From contig DF237710.1 of the NCBI GenBank assembly GCA_000708835.1, positions 1 to 35,544 of the forward strand: a stretch of DNA of 35,544 bases, given 5' to 3'. Both the position numbers and the translations under genes were made by a program. This DNA comes from Klebsormidium nitens (lineage: Eukaryota; Plantae; Klebsormidiophyceae). A model generated the notes under the pieces. That model did no database searches. It had not been told where the DNA came from and worked only from the letters and a program-made list of their open reading frames with translations. Within the stretch, counting starts at the first letter, position 1, and each line of letters begins with the position of its first letter. Below, one piece after another: positions 587-35,040 of this stretch.

Positions 587-3500
587 CTAGGCCAACACAG
601 TGGCCCCTTTACCAACGATTTCAGACACGTAGTCCCTAGCCCACAGGTCGTAATGCACTATCTCCTCAAGATCAGGTCGCAAAACGAGGTCGTCTTGATG
701 CTTCTCGCAAGTCTTCTCGATCACCTTGGCAATGTCCAGATATTGTATCCTGCAGTACAGAAGAAGAGCACAATCAGCACCTTCAAGGTTGTGGCAGGAG
801 AAGAGAACTTAACATGTCGTTGACAGGGCCAATGGACGGTGATAGCAGACCCACACATCTTGAGTAACACGAAGGTCACCGAAGCTTCCAGATCATCGAC
901 TTAAGCGATTTATCAAATAACCTTCTACGATCGGCTGCACCGAGTTTGCATTCCTGCCCACCCTATCTGCTCAAGCAGCACCCGCTTGTCCAAGGCCGCA
1001 CAATACTGCAACGTAAGATTCCATTAGCACTGGAAACTGACAGCAACTACAGACAATCAAGAGCCAGGAACAAGGACGAAGCGCTGTCCTTGTCCACCAG
1101 CAACCTTCGACCTTTGAAACCACCGCACAACTCCGCGGGAGGAGCTCTTTGTTCTTTTTATCCAGATCCAAGCCCGCACAGGACTCCTCGAGGCAATGCG
1201 TTGCATTACATCACCCATTCTGAAGAAGGACCGTGTGATTGATCTCGCCATCCCCACTCACCTTTCGTCAAGGAACAGCTCGACGGCCCTCTCGTTGGCC
1301 GCGCTGAGCACGCCGGTCATGGTGCCGCCCGCCCGGCCTGCGGCGTAGGCGAGCTTCATGGAGGGGTACTTGGCGTGGTCCGGCTTCCTGAACGTGAGGT
1401 CGCCCATCTTGATGAAGTCCAGGCGCGGCCACGTCTGCTCGCTGGTCGGGACGCGCTCCGGCCACGAGAGCGTGTACAGGATGGGTAGCCGCATGTCGGG
1501 CCACCCCAGCTGGGCCAGCACCGACGAGTCCTGCGCAGATCGACGGGAGAATGTGAGGCAGGCGGGAACGGACCCTGCTCACAATAGGTTTGACTTGACG
1601 CAGGTTGGTGAATTGTCACAGGCACAGAGGGAACTCTTTTGAAAAGACTCATGATGGGAACCGAGCTAGTCGGAGAGGAGGCCGATGAGAAGCTTTGCGA
1701 GTCGTTCAATTGGCTCTTTTTAGGACAATAACGAGCAAAAGACAAGGCCATCACATTTTTCAAGAATGCGACTTGTCGAAAGCACAATCGACCCACCCCG
1801 CTTCGGCAAAGCTGTACTGTAAGACTTACTGTCGTCCAGCACATCAAACTCGACAAGCCTCGATCTACTCTGAAAACCCCATAGAAGGCTGACGAGCCGC
1901 TCCTTCTCGTCCTCTTTTCAGAAAGCCCTATCCTCCCGTTTGTCAGCTATTCGTGGCGTGGACAGTATAAAGCCTACGCATGAATACGCTGGTCCCTCAC
2001 CTGCGTCTCGACCATGGAGTGGATGATGCTCTGCGGGTGGATGACGATCTCGATGTCGTCATAGTCTGCGCCAAACAGGTAGTGCGCCTCGATGACCTCC
2101 AGGCCCTTGTTCATGAGCGTCGCCGAGTCGACCGTGATCTTCTTGCCCATGCTCCAGTTGGGGTGCTTGATCGCGTCCTCCACGCGCACCGTCGCCAGCT
2201 TCTCCACGGGCCAGTCCCTGCAAGCAGATCGCTCTATTTGTAGTGCTATTTCTTTTCGGGTCTGTTTGTAGTGCTCTTTGTTTTCAGCGAAGTATTCTGT
2301 ACCCTACGTGTCCCAGAGACGACAATCTCGAGCTTGGGGCTACACTTCTGAAGTGTCTCCCGGTTCAGAAGACCTTGAAGGCGACGCTTTTAGCAGGAGC
2401 CTGCAAAACTTCTGCCGAGTATGGTGTTCGTTTCGGCTAACGGACTCCACCACTTATCGCTCTGCTCACACGACGAGGGCTGCTTGCATGCCAGGATATA
2501 AAGAGCTCTGCCGCGGGGACCCGGCCCAGTGAAGGGGCCTAGTACGGCCCTGCCCTTCAAGCAGACCAGCGTTTGGTATGTCAAATCAAATCAACGAACG
2601 GCTGTTCAAAGCTAGATCCGCTTTCGCAAGTGCCAACGGGGCACACCCTCGGAATGTCGACGGGACCACTGGAGCAACAGAGGATCAAGGTCAACGAAAG
2701 CCAGGCTAACCTGAAGGCACCTCCCGAAGCAGTCAGGATAATCCGACGTAGGCCGCCCTCTGGAAGGCCTTGTATGCACTGCAGGAATAAGGGGTGTCAA
2801 GATCTCACGTTGAAATCCAGCAAAGTTCACAAAGCCAGGCAGCACACGCAACTGCACTTCCGGCATTCAGCCCTAACGGCTTGCCACCGGCTCTCGAGTC
2901 TTCTCCAAAGCGATACCAAGCAGCCCGGCGAATTGTGCGCCGCTGTCCAAGAGCTCATCACTACAAAGCTCTCACCTGGAAGAGTGCAGAGTGCTCTGAG
3001 TCTGCGGGCAGGATGTTGACCCCATACTTCCTAGCGAGCGGCAACACGTAGGGCGCCCCAGCGATCAGCGTTTCCTTGTTCGCTAAGGCAATGTCCTTCC
3101 CGGCCTCAATAGCAGCTACCGTCGGCTTGAGCCCCGCACACCCCACGATCCCTGTCACCACCGTGACAGCATCCTTGTGCCGGGCAACCTGGCACACACA
3201 ATCGCAGAATAGTCAGTCACCATTCCTGATGGCCATACATGGTGTAACTCAATCTGGCTTTGCCCTTCTTGTCTCTTGAGCTTGAGGGCCATGCGCATCC
3301 GCACATTCCATCTGCATTACAACGCTAAACGCGCTTGCATCTGGCTAGAGCAAGACTTTCGGCTTACCTCCACGGTGCCCTGCTCCCCAGTCATGATCTC
3401 CGGTTGAGGCTGCACGTCTTTGATCAGCTCCTTCAACTCAGGGACCATGGCCGCATCTCGGATGGCCACCAGGCTAGGCTTGAATTCACGCACCTGCGAA

Positions 3501-5557
3501 GACAGACACAGATTTTGACAATGAGGGTTTGCCAGCACAGTTACAAGATGAAATGGGCATCAAACTGTCCTGTCATGATACAGCAGGGATCTGACCATCT
3601 CATTTTTGTTCAAAGGGGCTGCCAAATTACTGCCGAATCGGTGGCTTAGATCGAGTCCGCTCTTCTGCTGCTAGAACGATTATGAGAACGTCAGGTCAGA
3701 GGCAAATCAGAGCTTTGACATGAATGACGAGAGTGTCAAGTCCGCACGTGCGCCTCCTGCAATCTCGATTGCCTTTGTCAGAATGCAGGCGGTCTTACAA
3801 AGTAATGCAAGCATAAGTGCAAATCAGCGTCCCGTCTGATGAGCCCTAACCTACCTGGACAAGAAGTGGTTCTTCTATAGCACAAGGAGAACAGCACTAG
3901 GGGATTGCGACTGATCTAGGGGCTTGACAACTTTGACCTGGCCACATATAGTGACGCACCTGTTCAGCGAGCAGGGTGACGTTGGACCCTGCTGCAATTG
4001 CTACTACCTTGAATTTGTCGGGGTGCTCCCGAGCGATGTCCAGGGTCTGCAAGAACGGAGAAAGCTCAATCATTCCCAAGTCTTGGCAAACGAGGTAACT
4101 CCACAGATTGTACACAATATAGCTGTACTTATGCACAAAGCAATGATGCAGGAAGCTGGAGAACCTAAACAGGCGCCTGGCTACAGGACAGGATATGCGT
4201 CTTGGCCTCAAAATGCATGTATCAACATCTACATGTAGGTCTCTTACAACGTCTATGCCAGGGAGGTCAACGTTTCCCTGGAGGCAGGTCGCTGTTGCAG
4301 ACCACTCTTTATGGTCGATGGCTGACCTGCGTTCCAATTGAGCCGGTGGAGCCGACAAGCGAGATTGGCTTGGGGCCCTGTGTTTCCCAGTTCCAGGGGT
4401 TGTGAGGAGCGGTCGCCCTGCCGGGCCACGCTGGGGGGACGGTGTTAGAGGCGCCATTTGCGGAACCGTTGGAGCCGGCACAGCGGGCCCCAACAGAGGG
4501 GGGCACAGGGAGGTCCCTTCTGTAGACCCCTGCAGATAGCAGGGCCGTCAGAGTCTGAGAAGCGGGGTGTTGTCCCAACAGCAACTCGTGCTGGACAGAT
4601 GTCATGGCCTTTATGCAGTAAGAGCGATCGTCTTTTGGGCAGCAGAATCTGGGATGAGCTTCAATATTCTCCGCTCATTGCCCTCAATAGAGATGCTCTT
4701 GAACGACTTATATGCATAGCCAGAACCATTCTGGATTATGCATCTGGATGTGAGCAAAACAGCGTAAGCGGCCTGAGTATGCTCACGGCTGTATGGACTG
4801 TGAAGTGAAAGATGTGGTTAAATGTAGTTGGGACATACGTTCAGGGCCGCTTCTGCACTTCAAAAGCTAGCCGCTTCTGCACTTCAAAAGCCTAGCCCGT
4901 CACGGAGCACAGAAGGGTCAATGAAAGCGATCAATTTAATTTGTTTGATCGCAATGAAAACCAATGGACAATGAGTTCCCAACCAGAACTTGTAGTACGT
5001 CAGTGCTTACCTCTTGGTGGGGCGCCCAGACTGGTTGCGGACAACGAGTTCCTAACGTCGCTCCTCAAAAACTCAGACTGCAACTGTAAACAGGGAAGCG
5101 AACTTATACAGTCAGCTTTAGTGGGAAGCTTGAGTGCCTCCTGTCCTGTCTTGCCTGAAAGGGTGCTGAAGTACACCACATTACAATGGGTGCCATTCTG
5201 CCCGTATCGGGAGGCATTGTCCTTGTCCCAAGGGTTCTTCACGACCAGCATTCAGTTGCTAATCAAGTAATGAGACCTTGCATTGGATCTTTCAGCGGCT
5301 CATACGAGCCGGTTCTCTCAACACCTTAAGGTGTAGATATGCATTGGAACCAATGGCCAGCCTTGCAACCAAAAGACTAGGCAGTCCAGTGCTTCCTCAC
5401 AGCACGTTGTGGCCACATTGCACATTCCTGGCCCGATGAACGTACTCACCGAACCTGTGTGTCCTGAAAAAAGCTGCTGAGGACCAGATAACACGTCCTG
5501 CCTAGCGAAAGGAGCAGCAATGTTACCCACACAGCGGCTGACGGCAATCTGCGCCAT
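587..5557 (-). CDS. DXR: 1-deoxy-D-xylulose 5-phosphate reductoisomerase (plastid MEP pathway), ~506 aa, 10 exons: 5557-5450, 5077-5011, 4529-4327, 4046-3960, 3493-3368, 3188-2976, 2778-2711, 2217-2001, 1530-1262, 749-587
   Basis: Spliced translation gives the diagnostic DXR motifs [17 protein letters not shown] (NADPH binding), [49 protein letters not shown] and AANERAV. All junctions are GT-AG with matching phases and the stop is TAG at 587-589. The N-terminal Ser/Ala-rich segment resembles a transit peptide. The exon-2 acceptor could be 5083 instead of 5077. Confidence 0.97.
4846..4894. repeat. Tandem duplication of a 24/25-bp unit in DXR intron 2
   Basis: gccgcttctgcacttcaaaagcta is followed directly by gccgcttctgcacttcaaaagccta. 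Confidence 0.9.
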
Positions 5558-8900: not shown

Positions 8901-9006
8901 TGCAACACTTGTCAACTTGTAGGTCCGGTACCTTCTCCGGGCAATAACAATGTTAATGACAATGACAATGACAGTGACAGTAATGCAGGAACAGTAACAA
9001 TAACGT

Positions 9007-9186
9007 ACAATAACAATAACAATAACAATAACAATAACAATAACAATAACAATAACAATAACAATAACAATAACAATAACAATAACAATAACAATAACAA
9101 TAACAATAACAATAACAATAACAATAACAATAACAATAACAATAACAATAACAATAACAATAACAATAACAATAACAATAACAATA
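9007..9186. repeat. Perfect hexanucleotide microsatellite (ACAATA)30 with a degenerate 5' flank (~8940-9006)
   Basis: 180 uninterrupted bp of ACAATA. The upstream flank carries the variants AATGAC, AGTGAC and AGTAAC. Confidence 0.98.
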
Positions 9187-9432
9187 ATTCACTTGTCTCT
9201 CAAGCCCTTACTCCTCAGTTATCGTATCGAACCCCTCAGTTTTCGTATCAGCAAAGCTCAACACAAGTACAGTCTGCTCTTTTGAAAGCTCAAATTGCCG
9301 CCATATTATGTACCTATAATCAGTTCCCTCGAAAGAGGATTAGTAATAAAAAGCCGCTGTACTTTGAACATAAGCCCAAGCCCCCTAAATACTACGTCCA
9401 ACTCATAACGTTCCTTCGTGGCTCCCTCTTTT

Positions 9433-10563
9433 TCACATTGACTTCGTACGATGGAGGCTCAGGGGCGCAAGGCTGCTACTTTCTGTAGCTCCCGAACAAT
9501 TTCTGTTCGTCCGACCACCCTGCTCAGCTGTCATCAGGTAGAAGTCAGCCAGACGCTCGGTCACCAACACGACCGACTGTGACCTCTCAAGCCGCGACTC
9601 GTAAAACCTTGCCCCGCTGACGGCTTCTTCCGTTTCTTTGACAGGCGGAAGCGCACCAGAGTCGCTGTCGTTGCTCACATGACGTTGCTTGCGGGGCTTC
9701 GGCTCGGAATCCCCCCCAAAGACTCTACCGTGCTCTTTTACAAGCGCACTAAGAGGCCGCGTTTTCGGAGGCAGCGGCAAGCTGGCAGCCCTCCGCAAGC
9801 CCTGGCCGGGCATAGTCGCGGCCAGCTGGCCCCCGATCGGAGGAGGACTGAAAAGCCTCGAGGAGCAATTCTTGTCTGCACGCGGCGAAGCCACATTTCC
9901 GTGCGCGTCAAACTTCATCCCGCCTGGAAAGACGTTCTCCTCGTAGCTGCCGAGCCGAGCCAACCCAAGCTCGCGCGGAGTGTCGTGGAAGGACTGCGCG
10001 GGCGCGGACGCGGCTTTCTGAAGGGTCCGTCGCGGCGGCAGGTCCCGGCAGGGCTGGGCGGAGTGCGGCTGGGAGAGGCCAGGGTAATGCGTCTCGAGGG
10101 CTTTGTTGATGACGTCACGAGCGGCTAGAAGAGCCATCAGGTCTGACGAGGGGGCCGGCGACGTCAGCTCGAGGCTGCGGGTGGGGGAGAAGGACGACGC
10201 GGTTTGCTGCCGGCCTCTGTAAACACCCCCGTTGTCGAACGTACGATCGTCCTGCACCAGCCTGGGCGAAACCGGACGCGACCTACTAAGCCTCCGTTCC
10301 CCTTCGAGAAGCTCCCGAGACGCTTCTACCTGGTTGACCACAGCTTTGACACTGCGGCGCACGCCCGAGGAGAAGCTTGCACGTGGGTGGACGGAGAAGC
10401 AGACGGGGCAGAGGCGGCTTGCAGGTTGGGACTGGCTCTCCTTCAGGGAAAAGCGCTGCATGCACGCCAGGTGGCAGAGGTAGCCACAGCTGGCGGCATA
10501 GAGGCGCTCACTGCAGCTCATGGGGCAGACGCAGATGGGGCATGTGCCCCCGGAGGAGGAGGA
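9433..10563 (-). CDS. RING-finger protein (RING-H2-like, putative E3 ligase) with a long Ser/Pro/Arg-rich disordered C-terminus; terminal exon only, upstream exon(s) unresolved
   Basis: Acceptor ...cttattcctcactcccgcag opens an exon at 10563 reading SSSSGGTCPICVCPMSCSERLYAASCGYLCHLAC...LCPVC. The CPIC pair lies upstream of the ORF-track start at 10521. The frame is open to TGA at 9433-9435, and an in-frame TAG just upstream of the acceptor requires splicing. Confidence 0.75.
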   Translation of the reverse strand, partial: SSSSGGTCPICVCPMSCSERLYAASCGYLCHLACMQRFSLKESQSQPASRLCPVCFSVHPRASFSSGVRRSVKAVVNQVEASRELLEGERRLSRSRPVSPRLVQDDRTFDNGGVYRGRQQTASSFSPTRSLELTSPAPSSDLMALLAARDVINKALETHYPGLSQPHSAQPCRDLPPRRTLQKAASAPAQSFHDTPRELGLARLGSYEENVFPGGMKFDAHGNVASPRADKNCSSRLFSPPPIGGQLAATMPGQGLRRAASLPLPPKTRPLSALVKEHGRVFGGDSEPKPRKQRHVSNDSDSGALPPVKETEEAVSGARFYESRLERSQSVVLVTERLADFYLMTAEQGGRTNRNCSGATESSSLAPLSLHRTKSM

Positions 10564-11540
10564 CTGCGGGAGTGAGGAATAAGAAAATCTCAGCTAGATT
10601 GCCGCAAGGCTTTACTTTTGAGCTGGTTCACGGACGGGACTCGAGGGAGAGACATGGATGGAGCAGTGGTGCAGCAAGGGATCGCAAACAAGAGACTCGT
10701 TGCTCCTGCAAGGTTTGTTTCTGGTACCCAGTTCGGAATCACTCCATGATATCAGTTCACAGAAGAAAAGGCCTTTCGGCGGATGTGCAGGAGTCGAGCT
10801 TGGGTCCAGAAAATGCCGAGGGCGGCTTCTTGCCACAGGCCAGGCAACAAGCGAAGCGCAGAATTTTGTTAGTAGCACTGCCTCCTGAGAAAGTTCAGGA
10901 AACAGATCTAAGACCTTTGGAGCTTTGGCTAGTCTACCCGCAGGCTGTTGCAAACAAAGCTGGTACCACTAGAGCTCAAGAGCTCAAGCAATCTTCCACC
11001 GTCTGAACTTCTTCCCAGCTGAAATGACCGTCAAAGTACGGTGAGTTGACTGACAAGTTCAGCAGTCGAAGGTGTAAGCGTCCGCAAGAATCACTCACCA
11101 ACGACTATAACCGAAGCATCTTCAACGTGAGGGAGCAGGTTTGGACACCTTTCCTTGCACTCTCTACATACACCTATTATCTAAAAACGCTTCAACGATG
11201 CCAGTCATTCTTTTGGAGATTGGTCAGATAGCATCGAAATCGAGACAGTCTGCACCCTTATGGTGAGCTGATTGTGCTTAAGCCACTCTCTTAGGCAAAC
11301 CCGTATTCACGATTTTCACCTACTTAACAGGATCACTTCCTAGTGTGACAGCAATCTGAATGTCATTCGGATCTTGGACCCTTCCATTTCCTTAACTCCA
11401 ATCAAAACGGTACTATATCCTGACTCTTTCCAACCTTTCTACTGCCTGATCAGCTCCACAATTGCAATCATTCTTGCCGCCTGGTTTGACTCTGATGGCT
11501 TATAACTGATCCGAAATCACCCGAAGAAACCAGAACTGCT

Positions 11541-13806: not shown

Positions 13807-14618
13807 CTTGAGAGTTTAATCTTTGATGGCATGTCGCGACATTTCAAAATTCCGATGGTCGTTCACGTGGTGGAAGTTGGAACTGCCTGTCGTATCATTT
13901 AGTAATGCGGAGGCATGGAAATCACGTGTTGCACATTCGGTGAATCGACGGCCTCAAACTTACGCGAGCATCGTCGACGGTCCAGGCAACGGTCCAATAT
14001 GTGATTCGAATTTGCATTGTGGAGAGTTGCGCTCCGAGTCCTTGCTCATGGATTTGCTCGTTCCGCAACAGCCTGGTTCAAAGTTCAGCCACAGAGGGAC
14101 ATTGCAAGGACGCATTCGATACCCGGCTCAGGAAAGAGCAAAGGGGGATGGCCTGCTAGCTCTTCGAAAGTTGCGGTGCTCTGGGGACTGTTTCATTCAC
14201 TGTTGGGGCCACAGCCAGAGCGGCTTCAAGGGCGAGGAAAAAGCGCGGGGGTCTAGCTCCCTCCAATGTGTAAACAGGGGCAGTCACCTTATGTTCGTTA
14301 CTGTCTTCCCACAGGGGGTTGGACATTTCGAGAAGCACGCATGCGCGAGTTGGTTGGCAAGACACTGTCAACCATTGATCAATAGCGCACCGCAAGCAAA
14401 AAGTAGCCTTATAGTCTCTTGAAAACAAGCTTGAAAAACTAGAGAGTGAAAAGCAGCTGGATCAAGGATGCCGTCCCCGATGGTATACTTACGCCCACTC
14501 CTGCTTTTGGGGCTCGCACTCAGCTGGGGCCGTGCAGAGGGCCAGACACTCTCTGGCGATCGTAAGTCTTCCAACAGCAATGGAGCCCAATGTATAGGGG
14601 CCTGAATGGATCAGCATA

Positions 14619-17600
14619 ATGGAAATTTCTGTTTTGCTGTTTCGTCTGCCCGGGCCCAGCCAAAAGCTGAGGCAACTGATAGTGGGCCTCTTGCTTTTGC
14701 CGACAAGGGTATCAGAATCTACTCATGTGCAATGGATGAGGATAAACATTAATTACCAGAGCGTTGCCGGGGTTATGGTTTTCTTGTGGTCAAGCCGACG
14801 TCACAGGCCATGGGGCAGTATTACGACACTTGTCGAATCACTGACCTACACATTGTCGCAAGTGGTACAACAAAGCTGGAAACGCCTGTCCAGTCCCTTG
14901 GTCAATCCTGGGCACAGCTCGTTGCAAGCTTATTTTTCTAACCCAGCTTCTAAGTGCAACCTCAACCAGATGTACCAAGGCTCTGATTGCCACATCACCT
15001 AATCAGAAACTCCTGGCTGCTTCACAGGCTCTTCATGGTGAGCTATTTTTGATTCCGCCGCCAAGTCGCTTGCCGCTGACTGTCCATGCTTTGCTGAGTG
15101 CAGTGGCTGCGCTCCTGTCTCTCCAAGCATCGTTCGCCCCAAACCCAATCTTTGCGTCCTGGACCGGGATCGATCCGTGCGGGTCCCGATGGAAGGGAGT
15201 CTTCTGCGCCAACGCGTCCGTCCTGCGGCTGTGAGTCCTTCGTGCTGCGGGCCAGATGGAATTCTGTCCCCCTGAAAACGCAGTCGTTTGTCTCAATCAG
15301 TGGCCAAGTCGACTGGTTTTCTGATGACGGGTCTCTATTAGCGGTTTTGCAAGCTGCAGGCCAATGGGCCCCTCTGGCGGACTTCCTTCAAGGCTAGTCG
15401 ACGGCCCCGCTGCGCTTTGTCCTGATCCTTACTAGGCAGCAGTATAGGAGTGGCCCTTCGGTATTTGTGTGCAAAGCTAGCAAAAGATGGTGCAAGCATG
15501 CTCTTCTTGCACTTCCACCTGATTCAGGTCAGGGCACTGACGCCGTGCTGCTCTTGCCTGGACCCCCAGAGACCTGAGCAAGGCCGGGCTGTATGGCATC
15601 CTCACTCCGCAGCTGGGCAACCTCGTCAACATGGAAGAGCTGTGAGTGCATTCTAGGTCCGCTTCTGAGGACGCTGTCTTTCAGGTGTCAAACGCTGAAG
15701 TTGCAGCACAGCCTGCCTTGATTCCCGGTGGTTCTGCAGCTCTGGTTTGGACACCTGTTCCCGTAAGTTGGAAACGTTAGTTGTGGCTATTCCTGGTCTC
15801 AAAACTAAGTAAGAGCAAGCACCAGGTACCCATGCTTGTCTTCATTCTCTGTTTTGAGGCATGCCGCACCATTCATACCCGATCCGTGCTGAGGGATACC
15901 GCCTGATTGCGTCGGGCTTTCCTGCAGGTACTTGAATGACAACAACATTACGGGGACCATTCCTCCGGAGCTGGGCAACATGACGGACATGGTCCACCTG
16001 TGAGCACCTGATCTGAGTAACCCGACGCTCACTGTATAAGCTATAGATCGTTCCTTGGGCAAAGGAAACAAAATGTACCAAGTGTGTAGGCTCCTCACAT
16101 GGCTGCAAAGTGGCAGCCCCGCCATGTGGGCAGATGGGTGGAGGGCCGGACATGCACAATGTCTGCCAGAAAATTGAGATCCGATTTGCAACCGTTTGTG
16201 ATTTTGTAAGAGTTGCGGGCTTCTTAAACTTAAGGGCAGAGCTCTGTGTCGTGCATACAGTTGATCGGTTCTCTCCTCACTTTTTCTTTGCCGCAGATGG
16301 CTCCACGACAACCAGCTGACGGGGACCATTCCTCCGGAGCTAGGCAACATGAAGCACCTCCAAGATCTGTGAGGTCCTTCCCACTTTCTTGACATGCTCC
16401 TGGCTGACAGCTATACCATCATTCCTTGTGTAGAGTGACGATTCATTTGCTGACTCCTTGGCCAATCCTGTCTGCCTCGCTTCTGGGGAAAGGAACTGGA
16501 GTTGCCGGATGTTTGAGAGGGCTTTTGAGATCGGCCAAACAACTGAAGTAACGACATTCGCTTGCAGGACGCTGAACAGGAACAACTTGACGGGGAACGT
16601 GCCCGCCACGCTCAGCAACGTCACCAACCTCAGGTGAGTGGTCGGACCTTCTTTTAGCTTGTTGCTAAGTGCTGTGATTTGAGGTAGGGGCAAGCATAAT
16701 GAGTGCATCAGGGTCCTTGGCTCTTTGGAGCTTTGGGGAGGTGGGATCAATCCTATAAACATGCTTGCACCCTCAGCCGTGGAAATTTGTGCAACACCCT
16801 CTCCATGCCCAATTTTTCCAAACCCTCTCGGTTTGGAATCAGAGATTGCAGGTAAGTGTTGATTCTTTGTCATGTACTGTTGATTCCTTGCTTGGCCCCC
16901 TCTTTCGGTTTTCAACTCTGTACCTGAACGTAGCAACATGTTAGCCAGCTCGCTGTTCAATTCAATCAGCACTCACTGACCTTGTCCCGCACCCCTGCCC
17001 CTTTGCAGCGTCTCCAACAACCGGCTGTGCAGCGAGACCGTCGGCAATACGTGCACAAGCCCACCCTCCGTCTCTGATTCCCCCACCCCGGCACAGATCC
17101 TCATTGGCCTGCTAAAGAACCCCCCCGTCGCGACTATGCCGCCTCCTGTTGCCACTCCGACCCTCCCGCTGGCAATCCCCCCAACCCCGGTGGTTAACCT
17201 AACCCTCCCGGTTAACACCACCGCAACGGTGGCAAACCAGAGCATGCCGGTGCTAAACGCCACAGCACCGAGCATCGCCTTCGCCCCTGCTCCATTCATG
17301 CCGATATCCGCACGGGTGAATACCTCTAATGTCGTCAACTCCTCTTCAGCGGCAGTAATGAATCCCCTGGCAAAGGGGAACGCGACATGCGGTGGGTGTT
17401 ACCCGTCGAATACGACGCTAGGGCTGGATAACTGCACGTGCGTGCTGCCCAACGTGTACTTCCTCCAGTTCAGCGAACCGGTGCTGGCAGACGTCCAGGC
17501 CAACAGCAGCCTGCAGAACACGCTGGTAGACACGCTGGCATTCAAACTTGGACTGCAGAGGGCGCAGGTCCGGGTCGTCGACACGCGGGGGCCGCAAGTG

Positions 17601-20600
17601 CTCGCTGCAATCCAGGTGAGTCACGCGCCCGAAGTTGGGCGCGAAAGTCGTGGCATTGAAACGGCGCTGTTGACTGAAGCTTTCAAGGAAGATGAGCATA
17701 CGACCATGCGAGATAGTTTTCTCGGATCTTGCTTTGTGCGCCGTGTATGCTTACGTTGCTTTTGAATGAGGAGAATATCGTTCGGAGAGTCCTGCTACCT
17801 ACCTTCTTCTTTGACAGTCTTGTTTTCATGTCAAGCAAAACAATTCTCAATCGCTCACTGCCTGCAGTGAGAAAACCTTTAATGACAACCCAAGTGACTA
17901 GTCGATGAACTGCCAGGCGTTTTTGCGGGCAACTTCATCTAGCTGTCGCTCTGGCCCGCTATTCTCACAACCTCGCCGCAAACGGGCATCTTTCTGGCAC
18001 GATCGCTGCAGTAAGCGTAAACCAAGTCGGTGTCGAATTGCCGCAGATTTTGCCCCTGGCGGGCCTGCACCTGGACCTCGACCAGTCGGCCTTCCTGACA
18101 ACGCGACTGGCAACCAACGCCGTCAACTTCACTGCGCCCTTCACGCCCTACCGCTTCCTCAGTAAGTGCCACCGCCAACGCGCAGGTTATCAAGGCTCTG
18201 CCAATTCACCAGTGTGTTTACCTCATCGAAGATGATTCACAAGTGGTACAAGAGGCAGTGAGGTCGGGAAGGCGCGAGAGGCTTGGCGCGTTCGAATCGG
18301 TAGTAAAGGCGATGACTGTAAGTGTCGAAGTTAGCAATGTGACACTGGGGCGCCCGTGCGCAAACACTCCTCCCCCTTTTATCGAAACTGAGCATTGAAC
18401 CCGTCTACCTTATGGTGCTGCATGTCAAGCCGTTGGAAAGGGTTGTTTTAAGGTGGCGCGTTCTCAACCGACCCCTCTTTTCGCTCGCAGCCCCGTTGAA
18501 CCCGCTCCATCCATTCCCCATCTCGACCACCAGCAGCAAGAACGACGGCGTGCTGATCGCCGTCTTCTTCGGCCTCATCTACCCGCTCCTAGTTCTCGCC
18601 GGCACCGTCGGTTATCTGTGCCTCTGGCGAAAGGGCGGACGCGACCGGCCGGTCCGTCGGGACATGGAGCGAGGCGAGCTGACGGAAGCAGAGAAAGATG
18701 GTAAGGACCTCCCGCTCAGACAGCGTGTGTCTCGGCATGGAGTATCCACAAGCTGCCTCTTGACATCAATATGCGTAATTGTACAGCCGATGTGAGCCAA
18801 CGAGCATCTTTATACGCAGCCCGCTTTCCGCACCACAATTGGCACGTCACGCTAGAATGACGGCTCTCCAGACGAATGATAAACTGTCTATTCCACACCC
18901 ATTTAAAATCTCATTGAGAGGACGCGAGCATCTACTCATGGGATTGTCAAATAGTCCTTGAAAACAGTCCCCCGTTCACTTCTCCCCACCAGCCACCCTC
19001 TCGAAGTCACACTGCTCAGCTCAATACACCCACCCACTTGAGCTCCAAACCCCAAGGTCCTCACCTTTGTCCAATGCGTTCCCCCACTCTTTTGTGCAGC
19101 GTGGCAGCAGCGCAACTCTGGCATCATCCGCAGCAGCTCCCTCGAGGGCTCCGGCGGCGGCAGCGGCACCAACCCCTTCCGCGAGCTCAACGCAAACCGG
19201 CAGGTCTCCAAACCGGCCGGATTCAAGAAGCCCGCCCCGCCCGCGTTTTCCGCCGACACCGAGAACGCGAGCGAGCGCGATCACTGGGGCGGGCAGTGGG
19301 ACCGGGTGCGGCCCCAGGTGCGGCAGTACACTCTGGCGTACCTGCAGCAGGCGACCGGGAACTTCTCCCGGGGGATCGGGGAGGGCAACCTCGCCAAAGT
19401 GTTTGTGGTGAGTGCTCGCGGGCGGGGAGAAAAGGGGGTGGCACTTGGGCTGTCAAAAGGTTCGATGCGGCATGGTGATACGTGGCGCAAGGAAACCGGC
19501 CAGAGTCTCAGAGCTTAAGGAGTTTTCTCTACGTTCCTGCTTAGAAGTCAAGCCTGCAGGGCAGATGCGGGAGGTCGTAGGACATTCTCGACACGGCCAA
19601 ACATGAGACAAGCTTGAAAAACACTTGCGAAATTGCTCCTGGGTCCTTTCTGACTGCGCTCTCTGATCTCTTTATTTTTTCGTTCTTCGTCACTCCAGGG
19701 CCGCATTGAAGGTGACGTGCCAGTGGCGGTGTCGTGCCTGCGCAACGGCGCCGTGGTGCGGGCCAAGGACTTCAGCGCCCACGTGGCGATGCTGAGCAGC
19801 ATGGCGTCGCCGCACCTAGTTGCGCTGCTGGGCTACTGCTGCGAGGACGCGCACAAGATCCTCGTCCACGAGCTGTGCATCAACGGCAGCCTGCACGACC
19901 GCCTGCACGGTAGCGCACTGCCTCCTAGCGCTTGCTTTCGCGCCACGTGGAAGCCTATTTCTTGCGCTTTCGCCCAGCGCAACTGATTTCTCCCGCTGGA
20001 TCTCACTGGCAAGGAGGTTCGGTAGATCTCGGTCGTAGCATGTTCTTGCTGTCACTGAACGGGAGTGCTGGTCTGTTCTTGGCGACACTGTTTTGCTCGC
20101 ACTAGCCACCTGCTTTTTTAGTTTTCTTGAAACAGAATAGACAACACGCGACCCCTGCTCGTAGTGTCTGATTATTCCCCGCTGTGGAAGTGCTGCGGCA
20201 GTTTGATCTCGAATGCCTCATAATTGCCGGGACGCAGGCTATCCGCCCTCGCACTGCTTTCAGACCGCATTCAGCAGTTAAAAAATCTGACAATCGTAGC
20301 TTCTTCGGGTTGTATGCAGGTCAGACCGGTTCGCCGCCTCTGGACTGGAGCAAGCGCCTGCGCGTCGCCCGGGGTGCTGCCCTGGGCCTGGCGTTCCTGC
20401 ACGAGGGCACCAACACGGCGCTGGTCCACACGGGAATCAAGCCCAGTAACATCCTCGTCGACCAGGACTTCAACGGAAAGGTGGGCGGCACAACTCCCAC
20501 CGCTTGCATACGCATTTCCTCTCAAGTGGGGACTTCCTTATCTTCAAGAGGCTTTTTGAGGGCAGACGCTCGTGATTCAAAACTGTCGTCGCTTCGATTT

Positions 20601-22923
20601 TTCTTCCGACCTTTGTCTACAACGTCAACCACCTTAGCTCTCGTATGCATTTCAAGCTTCCAGCTGTCAGTTGTCGACTTAACACCCAGAAGACTTTCTA
20701 CTTAAGACTTCCCCCTCTACCCATCCACCGCCTCGGCACTTGGCCAACTATTGAAAGTTCATTCCATCTCTCGTGCAGATCGCTGGTTACGGCTCCGCCT
20801 ACCTAGCGGGCGATCTGGGCGCGAGCGCGCCCGTGCTTGGCAGCTTTGCTTACCACGCTCCGGAGATGACGTCAAGCGGCATCGCTTCGCCCAAGAGTGA
20901 CGTATTTAGCCTGGGGGTCATCCTGCTGGAGCTGCTCACGGGTCGGCGGCCCGTTGACACCAGCCAGCCCAAGAGGCAGCAGAGTCTGCTCACCTGGGTG
21001 AGAATAAGCCCTTTGTTCTGGCAGGAAGAGTTCGAGATTTTTCGAGAACGGAGGGCTTTTGACAGTAAAGGTCGGGGCTTCATATCGCTTGCGAACAGAC
21101 TATAGAAATGCATTTCCTTGTAAGTCATGCAGTCTCAATCTATCCTGGCGCTGTAAATTGTTCATGAGAGTCTTCCTTTGTCTTGCTTTTCAGTATTTTC
21201 TTGTACGACGTCTGAGTGAAGTAATTCGGTTTGCGCTCTCCTCCTGCACGGAGCAGATTTTGCAACGAATTTCGCAAGAGTCTTACTTTGGAGCCACTGA
21301 CCAATCAGGGAGCCTGACGCTTTCCCTTCTCCTCCGCAGGTCCTCCCGCAGCTGGAGGGCAGCGGCAAGAAGTTCTTCTCCTTCGTGGACCCCGCGCTGA
21401 AGCACACCGTGTCGCGCCCCCACCTCGCGGGCCTCGCCGCGCTCGCCAAGCGCTGCCTCGAGGGCGACCCCGCAGACCGCCCCACGGCCGCGGAGGTCGC
21501 CCAGCAGCTGGGCACCCTCGGCCTGGACGAGACCGTGGATCTGGAAGCCAGCGTGGGGTCCGTGAGCACCAAAGATTTGCTGCGGCGCGAGGCGAATCGC
21601 AGCCCCCTGAGACGGACGATGACGCCCATGGAGAAGGTCCCCGAGGCGATGTCCGAGGTGGACCTCAGCGGGGACGACGGCAGCCGCGCGGTCGCGGGTG
21701 AGACGGTTGCACGGGGGTTTGAGATTTGAGGGCCGCGCGGTCCAGGGGTGTGCGGAATGAACGTCAGAAAAAGGATGCGGATGCGAGGTTAATTTCAGAA
21801 GAGGATCCGGCTAGAGAATGCTGAGGGAGTAGAACAGGTTGTGTTGGAATGGAAACAGGCATGAGTATGCTTCCTCCAACTAGGCGCCTTGTCGAACATC
21901 TGCGACTGTTGTCTGGGTTGCAGTTTGTCAACCTGTCCCGACCTGAATCGACTGTCCGTAGAATCACGTTCAGCTGCAGATGAAAGTGTGTCGCAGCCTC
22001 GCACCGAGCGACTTTGCTCTGCCAGCCACGAAACCTGACGTTTATTCCATTCCCTCTTTTTCCTTTCCAACCAGGCCACAAGCACGCCCGCCACGGCAGC
22101 CACTCCGGCGGCCGCCAGGCCGGCTCCTACGCGGGCAGCCTTCCCCGTTCCGGTTCTTCCGGTGGGCGGAACGCTCGTCCGGTCAGCCCCGCTCCGGGCC
22201 GAGGCCCCGACCGGATTCCGGACCCTGCCAAGCGGAAGCCCGCGCGCCTTGTGTCAAACAGCGGGTCGGGCGCGGGCCTGACTGCGGAGCCGGAGGGCGT
22301 GCGCGCGCGCAGCGCCCCGCGGAGGCCGCCGGCCGCCGCCGAGAATCTGTTGGAGGAGCAGCCGTTGACGCCGCCGCCCAACAGGAGCAGGAGCCCATTC
22401 GGGTGAGGGGGCACCGTTTCCGTTCCGGTTCATAACCTTTGACTCTTCTTCAGTTGTCGAGAGCAGATTGCAGCTTCGTAAGAGGATGCTCGGTATTAGA
22501 GCAAAGTGAGGAGCTTTCAAAAACACACGTAGACCGCCTAGATTCTGATGCTTTTCAACGGCATGGTTGTCTTCTGTCGGTCTCGCTCTCGCAGAAAGGT
22601 ATGCTTCCTTAATAACCACCAAGATGAGTAAATCTTAGACACCTTCATCCGAATGGAACATGCTCGCCATTTGTTCACCGCTCCAAATTCACTTGTAGAC
22701 AGAAAGTAACGTGTAGCTCAAACGGCTTCTTTCCAGATGGGGCTCTGCGGCCAGTAGAAACCGGCCCGCCCCTGAGCCGCAGCCCAGCCCTCCCCCGGTT
22801 GCTCGTCCCGGTCACAGAAGGGCGACTTCGGGGCAGGAGAACGAGCCCCCTGCTGCCGCCTACCCGGAAAGCAGGAGGCAACCAGGTCACGCGCGAGGCG
22901 GGTCTGATATGAACAGATACTAG
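14619..22923 (+). CDS. LRR receptor-like pseudokinase (RLK/Pelle), ~1070 aa. Exons: 14619-14708 (uncertain), 15028-15037, 15104-15230, 15570-15641, 15928-15999, 16297-16368, 16568-16633, 17009-17615, 18047-18161, 18491-18700, 19100-19407, 19699-19909, 20320-20480, 20779-20997, 21340-21697, 22075-22402, 22737-22923
   Basis: Contains an LRRNT cap ([23 protein letters not shown]) and 72-nt phase-2 plant LRR exons ([16 protein letters not shown]). A Pro/Thr stalk, a Cys-containing juxtamembrane domain and a TM helix ([26 protein letters not shown]) follow. The RLK kinase fold is recognisable ([47 protein letters not shown]). Summed exon length is 3213 nt, in frame. The first exon and start codon are tentative. 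Confidence 0.9.
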
Positions 22924-32820: not shown

Positions 32821-35040
32821 TCATACGATTGCGTTCGCCGCACTTGCAATCCTGGGCCACAAGTCTGCGCACTCCTTTCCGATTGGTCCAGTGATAGCAG
32901 AACCTGCAAAGTCCAAATCCATTTTATGTGGGTTTACAACAGGTAGACCCACTAATTTCAAAAGCACTGGACAATGAAACGAACGAGAATGACAAACAAG
33001 GCACAAGGCCCGGACAGACTGCCTAGCAGAAAGTCGATAAACGAGTGGTGAGACATTGTGGAAAGGTTCTGGCAGATGAAGGCTCTCAGCGCTGTTGAGC
33101 CGATTGTAATCAAGCAGGCGACCAAACCTGCTCAGGCTGTTGGGACACAGTCAATCATCATTGAGCTCACTCATGCTGCCAGACACAACCAGAAGCAACA
33201 CCAGTTTTGTTGCGAATAGCATTCTCCAAAGACCCCTTCCGCGATTCTGAGTCGGCGCACACATACGTCACATGCTAAGGACTATCCTTGTCAACAGCAC
33301 ATGAATCTCAGCTGACAATGCAGTTTTGAAGAGTACTCACCCTTCATTTCACCCTTTGGGTTGACGATGACCCCCGCGTTGTCTGCACGTAAAAGAAATC
33401 AGTCAGCAAGTAATCGAGTCGCAAAGCATGAGCCAGTTACTAACTTCCCATGCAAAATGAACTGTAAGGTGCAAAGATGATTGGCTGCGACACACTCCCG
33501 GCCGAAAACGCAAGGGAAAATCTTGGGGGTCAGAATCGAGTCAGGCAGGCCCAACTGTGACGGGCTCCATACAGAACAGTACTCACCTTCAAAGTACATG
33601 AAGACACCGTCCTTTCTCCGCCACGGCTTGCGCTGACGGACGATCACGGCGGGCATGACTGCAAGAGCGAAAGCAAGATGTCAAGATTAAGACTGGATAT
33701 ACAATCTAATTCATGAAGTGGAGACCTGAATGCGAAAAGTCCTTTCAGAGATTGAGATCCTTTAAGTCCATAATTTCATGCCCTGGGCTGAGACTCAACC
33801 AAGCATTAGCAACACCACTGGAGAATACTGGAGATGGTAAAGCAACAGAGTGTCTGTATCAAAAAGAGAGGGCTCAATGACTAGTCGTCGTGCTGAACCA
33901 AACTGCTTGTGCAATTCAAACACCTGCAAATTTGCGAACCGTGCTGAACTTAACTGCTTTTGCAGAACAATTCCCTAAGAATTTGGCCACGCTTCAATTG
34001 CCCTTTCCCTTCAGCAAACTTTGAATGACGCCCTCACCAAAATCATCGAATAATAAACCGTTCGTGGCTCATCTTTCCTAAGGAATGCCTGTAATCAATC
34101 TGCTGAGACTTTACTCCAAAAATACCAGACACCACGAGGCTGCGCAGGATCACCTACCCTTCTTCCTCAGGTCAGGCTTTCCCTTCTTCACGGTGGCCAT
34201 GACCATGTCCCCAACAGCTCCTGCTGGCAGCCTGTTCAGGCGGCCCTTGATCCCCTTCACTGAGATGACGTACAGGTTCTTGGCCCCCGTGTTGTCAGCA
34301 CAGTTCATGACCGCGCCCACTGGCAGAGCCAGGGACATGCGGAACTTGTTGCCAGAGGCACCTCCGCGCCCTACAGGGCGGGCAGAAGCAGCGCTTTGTA
34401 GTTGTGGCTCCTTGCAACATAACCTTAGCCCGGCCAATGTGCGTCGCTTGCATCAGTCTTATCCTCTCCAGCTCCTCAAACCTCGCTGGTAATGGTCTTG
34501 CAAGCCTCAGAATATGGCCTCTGCTTGGCAAAAGAGCTGAATGACATAACAAAACGTCGGCAAAAGGGCAGCAAAGTCAGCCAGGCAAGAAAGCCACTAA
34601 TGCGTAGTAGGCTGCAGATTTGTTTTTCTTCAGTCCTCAATGAACTGTTGGAAGTCATTACCTGCTGCGAAAGAGAATAACAAGGTCCCCAGGGAGGAAG
34701 GTATCACGCAACCCCTGACCAGGACTTGGAAAGAACCTGCCTAATTGTCACGGGCCTCAGAAAGACACCCACAATCCACCGTCAAACGCACGGCTAGCAA
34801 TGCCCCCATAACAACTCAAAAACGTAACAACACACAGCTCATCCTCTGTCCCCAATCGTGCTCCAAACTGAGCCTCGCCTGCTCAACAGCCACAACCGAC
34901 CACACAGACTATTAGACCACAGATCCCAAAAGCTTCGTCATCTCGACCTGCTGATCCCCTGAATACTTCCTCCTTCGAGCTGAATGCCCACCCTGAGCCA
35001 CTACACGCAGCACAACATGCTCCTCACCTCTCTTCGACAT
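32821..35040 (-). CDS. RPL23: 60S ribosomal protein L23 (uL14), 140 aa, 5 exons: 35040-35028, 34370-34158, 33658-33587, 33382-33341, 32903-32821
   Basis: [38 protein letters not shown]...[41 protein letters not shown]; 423 nt, canonical length and sequence. Confidence 0.99.
33082..33166 (-). ncRNA. Putative intronic box C/D snoRNA with two guides, in RPL23 intron 4
   Basis: Sense to the host gene: box C AUGAUGA (33161-33155), D' CUGA (33135-33132), C' UUGAUUA (33113-33107), D CUGA (33089-33086), and a terminal GCUC/GAGC stem. The guides are complementary to the conserved LSU rRNA segments CUGUUGGGAC and CUGUUGAGCU. Confidence 0.8.

Follow-up and report, generated by a model that had tools for sequence, protein, structure and literature searches.

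The window analysed here is a 35,544-nucleotide stretch of the genome of the streptophyte alga Klebsormidium nitens (contig DF237710.1, assembly GCA_000708835.1, positions 1 to 35,544), and the gene in question, which occupies 14468-22406 of the + strand, encodes a leucine-rich repeat (LRR) receptor with a pseudokinase specified by its 3' half. It is proposed, at a probability of about 0.7, that this is an expressed and conserved single-pass receptor with a kinase fold that lacks the ATP-anchoring Lys, the catalytic-base Asp and the Mg-binding Asp and that would signal non-catalytically. A non-catalytic receptor is the best reading because the catalytic residues are lost while the kinase fold is the most constrained part of the protein, and because the C-lobe landmarks, the activation segment and the tail are conserved. 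A preliminary description of the locus had favoured a selected non-catalytic receptor as well, and the absence of the Lys and both Asp residues under purifying selection bears this out.

A fifteen-exon receptor gene and its transcripts

From N to C terminus the predicted protein consists of a signal peptide, an LRR N-cap, four LRRs, a Pro-rich stalk, a SEA-like membrane-proximal domain, a transmembrane helix, the pseudokinase and a long tail. The gene and its exons, with the basis of each assignment, are as follows.

14468-22406, + strand: receptor gene, 15 exons, 1007 codons
14468..14561, + strand: exon 1, start codon and signal peptide (MPSPMVYLRPLLLLGLALSWG...); from the sequence, GT donor, conserved in L001
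15104..15230, + strand: exon 2, LRR N-terminal cap; Pfam LRRNT_2, E 8.5e-8, AG/GT borders and length conserved in L001 and L002
15570..15641, + strand: exon 3, LRR 1, 72 nt; 3' end is the contig loose end ahead of 15928, conserved in L001 and L002
15928..15999, + strand: exon 4, LRR 2, 72 nt; spliced contigs, translation
16297..16368, + strand: exon 5, LRR 3, 72 nt; spliced contigs, translation
16568..16633, + strand: exon 6, LRR 4, 66 nt; spliced contigs, borders
17009..17615, + strand: exon 7, LRR C-cap (Cys cap), Pro-rich N-glycosylated stalk and first two thirds of the SEA-like domain; spliced contigs
18047..18161, + strand: exon 8, final third of the SEA-like domain; spliced contigs, profile match, alignment
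18491..18700, + strand: exon 9, transmembrane helix, then RKGGRDR (basic) and the first juxtamembrane residues; spliced contigs, translation
19100..19407, + strand: exon 10, juxtamembrane region, helix motif and degenerate Gly loop (19375-19404); translation, contigs, orthologues
19699..19909, + strand: exon 11, beta-3 with Ser for Lys (19732-19734), alphaC with His (19780-19782) and hinge; translation, contigs, alignment, PF07714
20320..20480, + strand: exon 12, alphaE and catalytic loop HTGIKPSN; translation, contigs, aligned to the HRD of BAK1
20779..20997, + strand: exon 13, GYG for DFG, activation segment, APE, SDVFSLG and family signature QQSLLTW; translation, contigs, orthologues
21340..21697, + strand: exon 14, remainder of the C-lobe with DRP (21475-21483), then the beginning of the conserved tail; translation, contigs, orthologues
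22075..22406, + strand: exon 15, Ser/Arg/Gly-rich C-terminal tail and stop codon; contig loose ends, AG acceptor, frame, conserved in L001-L003 with small indels

The sequence itself (canonical AG/GT) gave the exon borders and phases, which were then compared with spliced contigs; over about 19100-21700, five AG-to-GT stretches translate to one continuous kinase-like frame with compatible phases. An in-frame stop lies 18 nt upstream of the start codon in exon 1. The TGA at 21727, where the genomic open frame ends, is intronic, as the transcript joins 21697 to 22075 across an intron at 21698-22074. The stalk in exon 7 carries many N-x-S/T sites and is followed by the Cys-containing SEA-like domain, which starts at about 17400, runs through 17615 and ends in exon 8. 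The conserved Ser/Arg-rich tail is about 190 residues long, and its exon 15 matched no Pfam family.

Transcripts of the gene are found in public sequencing data. Thirteen sequencing runs contain about 40-50% of the words sampled from 19100-21740, roughly the exonic share. Contigs of four runs, from four studies and under two organism labels, were compared with 15901-21900: those of 3.2-3.7 kb leave out ten introns, from 15999 to 21339, each cut precisely at GT..AG and without a differing letter. At their upstream loose ends the contigs continue into exon 3 and at the downstream ones into exon 15; in all four runs the loose end that follows 21698 agrees with the sequence at 22076. The type of the runs was guessed as RNA, and the contigs must derive from spliced RNA because intron-free contigs have no other source. 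The exon 1/2 and 2/3 junctions lie outside the compared stretch and are based on sequence and conservation. At the 5' end the transcript contigs exceed exons 1-3 by about 440 nt, which implies a long leader or further 5' exons upstream of 14468. The receptor gene is intact, spliced and expressed; the preliminary description had called the splice phases preserved and the frame intact and had suggested confirming expression from cDNA, and the compatible phases and mismatch-free junctions agree with it on both points. In one run (X1) a separate low-depth contig of 242 nt (19954-20195) lies wholly within the intron between exons 11 and 12; it reflects a residue of either unspliced RNA or DNA in this library.

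The membrane-proximal ectodomain module belongs to no Pfam family. Among 810 six-frame segments, a profile built from this domain of three relatives from zygnematophyte algae (described below) gives E 1.4e-7 on exon 7 and, in collinear order, E 0.049 on exon 8. The module has a C-x2-C...C-x-C pattern and, as predicted on a relative, a beta-alpha-beta-beta-alpha-beta topology. The fold was predicted for the Closterium relative P0154 (residues 222-342), with the exon pieces of the window gene and its orthologues as alignment rows, so that the model (predicted local distance difference test, pLDDT, 89.6) is that of the relative and not of the window protein itself. In an exhaustive structural search with the P0154 module the clear first match was the membrane-proximal domain of Arabidopsis CARD1/HPCA1 (Z 10.9, root-mean-square deviation 3.1 A over 116 of 121 residues), followed by the membrane-adjacent domains of dystroglycan, MUC16 (SEA) and protocadherin; Foldseek against the PDB with the same module gave nothing below E 0.017. 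The profile also matches P0248, an active kinase of K. nitens, and P0127, a Closterium protein resembling the STRUBBELIG (SUB/SRF) receptors.

Lost and retained kinase motifs under purifying selection

All catalytic residues of the kinase are replaced. The Gly loop is degenerate, with two of its three glycines gone; beta-3 reads VAVS, with Ser in place of Lys; alphaC reads DFSAHV, with His; HTG (20427-20435) stands in the place of HRD and GYG (20785-20793) in that of DFG. The scaffold motifs are intact, namely KPSN (20439-20450), APE (20857-20865), SDVFSLG (20896-20916) and the RP of DRP (21478-21483). These replacements and retained motifs had been reported by the preliminary description, and translation of the exons agrees with it; its degenerate Gly loop likewise stands, apart from the start, given as 19372, which is one codon upstream of 19375. 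When the exons are aligned with 49 receptor-like kinase (RLK) kinase domains, the VAIK-Lys column holds the Ser, the HRD-Asp column the Gly of HTG and the DFG-Asp column the first Gly of GYG. By the sequence definition of a pseudokinase, the loss of at least one of these three residues, the window gene has lost three of three, as have the three orthologues described below.

The alphaC His calls for more caution. The residue is present as previously described, whereas its value as evidence of lost catalysis is weak: active PTI1-like kinases such as 5xd6 have Gln in this column and SRFs have Ala or Leu, so that a non-Glu residue here characterises the clade at large and does not count as separate evidence of lost activity.

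Single exons 11, 12 and 13 are matched by PF07714 or PF00069 at scores reaching or approaching the thresholds (PF07714 on exon 11, 34.4 bits, E 1.9e-8; PF00069 on exon 13, 38.5 bits). The solved structures nearest to the exon pieces are CARK1, BIK1, RIPK, PBL2, SYMRK, BAK1 and IRAK4 in the PDB. Kinase profile matches combined with plant RLK/RLCK (receptor-like cytoplasmic kinase) and IRAK4 structures as nearest neighbours identify an RLK/Pelle (IRAK) kinase fold, which on these matches is real and not a chance motif match. From established kinase biochemistry, the joint loss of Lys, catalytic-base Asp and Mg-binding Asp predicts no ATP-dependent phosphotransfer. The domain is predicted to be unable to transfer phosphate because these three residues and two of the three Gly-loop glycines are lost together.

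An exhaustive phmmer search of 1.84 billion representatives with exon 13 as query returned short open reading frame calls from relatives (P0001, P0002, P0007), whose contigs give three orthologous loci (L001, L002 and L003-5), and no full-length database protein identical to the window gene. All exons that are covered by the contigs and locatable by BLAST are present in the orthologues. Exons 8-14 are unchanged in length, small indels occur in exons 7 and 15, the AG/GT sites are conserved and no frame is broken in any orthologue; exon 1 was not found in L002 by BLAST, and the L003 sequence begins inside exon 7. The degenerate motifs are conserved in L001, L002 and L003 as IGEG(N/S)LAKVF, (V/I)AVS, HTG and GYG, so that the losses are common to four taxa.

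Nei-Gojobori (NG86) counts summed exon by exon give, for exons 10-14 of the window gene, ratios of nonsynonymous to synonymous substitution (dN/dS) of 0.060 against L001 (dS 0.28), 0.134 against L002 (dS 0.71) and 0.128 against L003 (dS 0.68). By region, with two values each, dN/dS is 0.058 and 0.12 for the kinase core (exons 11-13), 0.09 and 0.08 for the LRRs, 0.19 and 0.22 for the stalk, and 0.21 and 0.16 for the tail; the kinase core is lowest or near-lowest in the protein and well below stalk and tail. The exon 13 protein is 100% identical to that of L001 despite 15 synonymous differences, and introns are only 72-78% identical between orthologues, with many indels. Purifying selection on the gene is strong and acts most strongly on the kinase core; the preliminary description, which had named a ratio near 1 as the outcome that would count against it, is upheld here. 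A dN/dS of 0.06-0.13 together with the conserved structure therefore indicates a selected pseudokinase and not a decaying gene.

Elsewhere in the window the following features were noted. The 386-codon frame is possibly a single-exon gene for a RING protein just upstream of the receptor gene.

1261-3212, - strand: DXR (1-deoxy-D-xylulose 5-phosphate reductoisomerase) gene, exons; three open segments match Pfam DXPR_C, DXP_redisom_C and DXP_reductoisom
4846-4897: repeat with a 24-bp unit, 2.1 copies
8942-9187: (CAATAA)n microsatellite, 41 copies, 91% matches
9436-10593, - strand: 386-codon open frame, third-position G+C (GC3) 0.72; weak RING-finger match (zf-RING_2, E 0.004)
34153-34452, - strand: uL14 (L23e) ribosomal protein gene, one exon; Pfam Ribosomal_L14, E 2.6e-12

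An algal receptor family without the beta-3 Lys

After the orthologue fragments, the best single-domain matches of exon 13 are proteins of Mesotaenium endlicherianum and Closterium, with Spirogloea muscicola added by a follow-up search. These uncharacterised relatives are ME000007S09853 (Mesotaenium endlicherianum), CAI5934306.1 and its NIES-64 counterpart (Closterium) and SM000077S21607 (Spirogloea muscicola), and they fit the streptophyte alga guessed by the preliminary description. Like the window gene, they possess an N-cap, four LRRs, an N-x-[LF]-C cap, a Pro-rich stalk, a C-x2-C...C-x-C SEA-like domain, a transmembrane helix and a kinase domain; they also lack the beta-3 Lys (theirs read AVLL, VVLV, VVVV and VVMV) and a Glu in the alphaC column. 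Unlike the window gene, they keep the HxD Asp (HRD, HKD, HGD, HSD) and most keep the DFG Asp (DVG, DYG; EYG in Spirogloea), and they carry a GDLRF/Y insert and DPYLRLN, neither of which is in the window gene. Kinase identity to the window gene is only about 35-60% per exon. The QQSLLTW motif is found in the window group and the zygnematophyte relatives and in only one other of 501 collected proteins (P0159, Buddleja), where it is taken as chance.

The window gene thus has both the architecture of this group and its combination of QQSLLTW with a missing beta-3 Lys, and it probably belongs to an algal receptor family of Klebsormidium-type taxa and Zygnematophyceae that as a whole lacks this Lys; our estimate given at the outset covers this membership jointly with the non-catalytic reading. 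Read from the motifs, Lys (and Glu) went first, in the ancestor common to the family, and both Asp residues later, in the Klebsormidium-type line, because the relatives without Lys keep the HxD Asp and most also the DFG Asp. The same motifs have decayed independently in two relatives: Spirogloea P0203 has EYG for DFG and a degenerate Gly loop, and the SRF-like kinase P0127 of Closterium NIES-68 has HRS and GAG with the Lys kept. A word-index search with full-length P0154 returned no further family members, its list being dominated by bacterial and plant LRR proteins; a kinase-region search with P0079 ranked mostly multi-kinase fusion proteins and was used only to choose named references, and an ESM Atlas look-up gave generic RLK clusters only.

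A tree of 49 kinase domains (IQ-TREE, LG+C20 PMSF) places the zygnematophyte family in one clade (100/99). The SRF clade (100/99) unites land-plant SRF7/8-type proteins with one Closterium protein (P0127). The zygnematophyte family is sister to the SRF clade (90/85), and the pair is sister to the PTI1-like kinases of RLCK-VIII (86/68). The safe statement from this tree is that the family lies in the SRF/PTI1-like group of RLK/Pelle kinases; SRF is favoured as its sister clade, a position that is not statistically decisive. The window gene was placed exon by exon, each with its three orthologues and with exon 10 trimmed to its last 30 codons, by maximum likelihood on a fixed backbone. Exons 13 and 14 fall inside the family (99.6% and 86%) and exon 11 is its sister (75%); the last 30 residues of exon 10 go with the algal SRF-like protein (59-74%). 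Exon 12 falls on an unrelated 'inactive kinase'/PERK branch (99%), although it has little signal and its identity to every sequence compared is just 40-47%.

A broader scenario joins these results, and we give it slightly less than even odds: an ancient, undescribed streptophyte receptor-pseudokinase family, sister to SRF, would have been 'dead' (without the Lys-Glu pair) before the Klebsormidiophyceae split from the line of Zygnematophyceae and land plants, would have lost both Asp residues later in the Klebsormidium line under strong purifying selection, and would itself have been lost in land plants. If this is true, non-catalytic receptor signalling was part of the earliest RLK toolkit.

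Proposed mode of action and comparison with known systems

We propose that the ectodomain binds a ligand or the ectodomain of a partner, that the pseudokinase acts as a rigid docking or allosteric module, and that pseudokinase and tail recruit an active kinase or are phosphorylated by one, which would carry the signal onward. Precedent for signalling without phosphotransfer would be SUB of the neighbouring SRF family, and further BIR2 and MDIS1.

Several points weigh against this proposal. The active partner kinase and the signalling complex are putative, and the loss of phosphotransfer is predicted from the residues; a few kinases without canonical residues are still active. The integrity of the whole domain is deduced from exon-level matches and conservation, since the searches worked with exon pieces and the one fold model is that of a relative's ectodomain module. 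The tree is one without LRR-VI-2, LRR-VIII-1 and BIR kinases, two of the five exon segments (the end of exon 10 and exon 12) place outside the family, and the alternative that joins SRF and PTI1-like kinases without the family is not rejected (delta lnL 2.7, approximately unbiased (AU) test, p 0.13). This last value also bears on the preliminary description, which had compared the receptor with SUB 'in role, not ancestry': the likeness in role may stand, but the denial of ancestry is not supported, as the algal clade is the favoured sister of SRF/SUB within the SRF and PTI1-like group.

The pseudokinase could instead work as a negative regulator in the manner of BIR2, sequestering a co-receptor kinase and freeing it on ligand binding. 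The layout of a small LRR ectodomain with a pseudokinase is BIR-like, and exons 12 and 13 both match BIR2 (4l68) in the PDB, but in the middle of the list and never at its top; the tree was built without BIR kinases. Positive action as a scaffold and negative action by sequestration are indistinguishable from sequence, and we regard the specifically BIR2-like version as doubtful.

That the gene is a true member or co-orthologue of the STRUBBELIG family (LRR-V), a Klebsormidium SUB/SRF and not part of a separate algal family, is unlikely. SRF is the favoured sister of the algal family, the end of exon 10 goes with the SRF-like Closterium protein, which the SEA-like profile also matches (E 0.006), and the layout of N-cap, LRRs, Pro-rich region, transmembrane helix and atypical kinase is common to both. 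However, Closterium has both an SRF-type kinase (P0127, within the SRF clade) and a family member (P0154), so that the two lines were already separate in Zygnematophyceae; exons 11, 13 and 14 go to the algal family and not to SRF; and the window gene has four LRRs, not six, while SRFs keep the beta-3 Lys and have HRN/DCG. A simple algal orthologue of SUB had been the initial idea and was downgraded after the kinase tree.

It is very improbable that the domain is still an enzyme, by a non-canonical mechanism (a WNK-like displaced Lys or Mg-independent transfer) or by other chemistry. A Lys is present in the Gly-loop strand (LAKVF), the Lys and Asn of the catalytic loop (KPSN) are kept and conservation is very strong; against this, Lys, catalytic base and Mg-binding Asp are all absent together with two of the three Gly-loop glycines, and a Lys or Arg in the Gly-loop strand is common in ordinary RLKs (GRVY/GKVY) and is not at the WNK position. 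A WNK-like alternative Lys was rejected for this reason, the Lys of LAKVF occupying an ordinary RLK position. Nothing beyond the missing motifs speaks for a gene in decay or inactivated of late, or for an error of assembly or annotation, and this reading is refuted by spliced transcripts in four studies, losses common to four taxa at dS up to 0.7-0.9, dN/dS of 0.06-0.13 and intact frames in every orthologue, which leaves it a negligible chance.

The preferred reading, a non-catalytic receptor, provides a clean, expressed and strongly constrained receptor pseudokinase in an early-branching streptophyte alga, with relatives that show a stepwise catalytic loss, Lys first and Asp residues later. 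It is a simple system in which to study signalling by a dead receptor kinase and to look for the active kinase paired with it, and it bears on whether SRF-type atypical signalling predates land plants. Current concepts are unchanged, because atypical RLKs are common. The receptor pseudokinases SUB, BIR2 and MDIS1 are known land-plant regulators, and the evolutionary depth of such receptors is poorly documented; the literature searched, limited in coverage, yielded no paper on this receptor family or on SRF relatives in streptophyte algae. Klebsormidium has been credited with 91-94 RLKs (PMC10868138).

Among known systems, the CARD1/HPCA1 ectodomain (LRR-VIII-1; PDB 9vbv, residues 419-542) is matched by the fold predicted for the P0154 module, to which exons 7-8 align; the two modules share only 16% identity, and the CARD1 kinase belongs to a different subfamily. 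PTI1-like kinases (RLCK-VIII, e.g. CARK1, PDB 5xd6) are the best solved-structure match for exons 11 and 13 and the next clade out, and they share the non-Glu alphaC column (theirs Gln). Unlike the window gene, they are cytoplasmic and active, with Lys, HRD and DFN and no ectodomain.

BIR2, MDIS1 and MRH1 resemble the window gene in the proposed mode, a small LRR ectodomain with a pseudokinase that regulates an active partner kinase (PMC10868138, PMC10916322), whereas common descent with BIR2 or LRR-VI-2 is not evident below the RLK level. The LRR-VI-2 receptors (MDIS1/MRH1) carry the juxtamembrane motif VGPWKTGLSGQLQKAFVTGVP and lack the generic ...AT(D/N)NF(S/D) helix (PMC10916322); in exon 10 VGPWKTGLSGQLQKAFVTGVP is absent and a generic ATGNFS helix is present.

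The closest comparison is with SRF/SUB (LRR-V), which like the window gene combine N-cap, LRRs, Pro-rich region and atypical kinase, and phosphotransfer is dispensable in SUB (PMC3095605, PMC1855328), whose function tolerates K525E and E539A and whose activity was not detected in vitro (PMC3095605, PMC1855328). SRFs share with the window gene the non-Glu alphaC column and an SDV(F/Y)S(F/L)GV(V/I)(L/M)LELLTGR(K/R)P block, but differ in their retained beta-3 Lys and in HRN and DCG/DSG. They have six LRRs after a SUB domain of 59-60 residues (PMC1855328), as against four LRR exons here behind an N-cap that matches only the generic LRRNT_2, and a SEA-like domain has not been noted in them. Land-plant SRF kinases are 72-84% identical among themselves and only about 35-45% identical to the window gene, and the algal relatives form a clade of their own, to which exons 11, 13 and 14 are drawn. 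Since atypical RLKs are common, the window gene joins an established class of receptor pseudokinases, within which it may represent a new subfamily.

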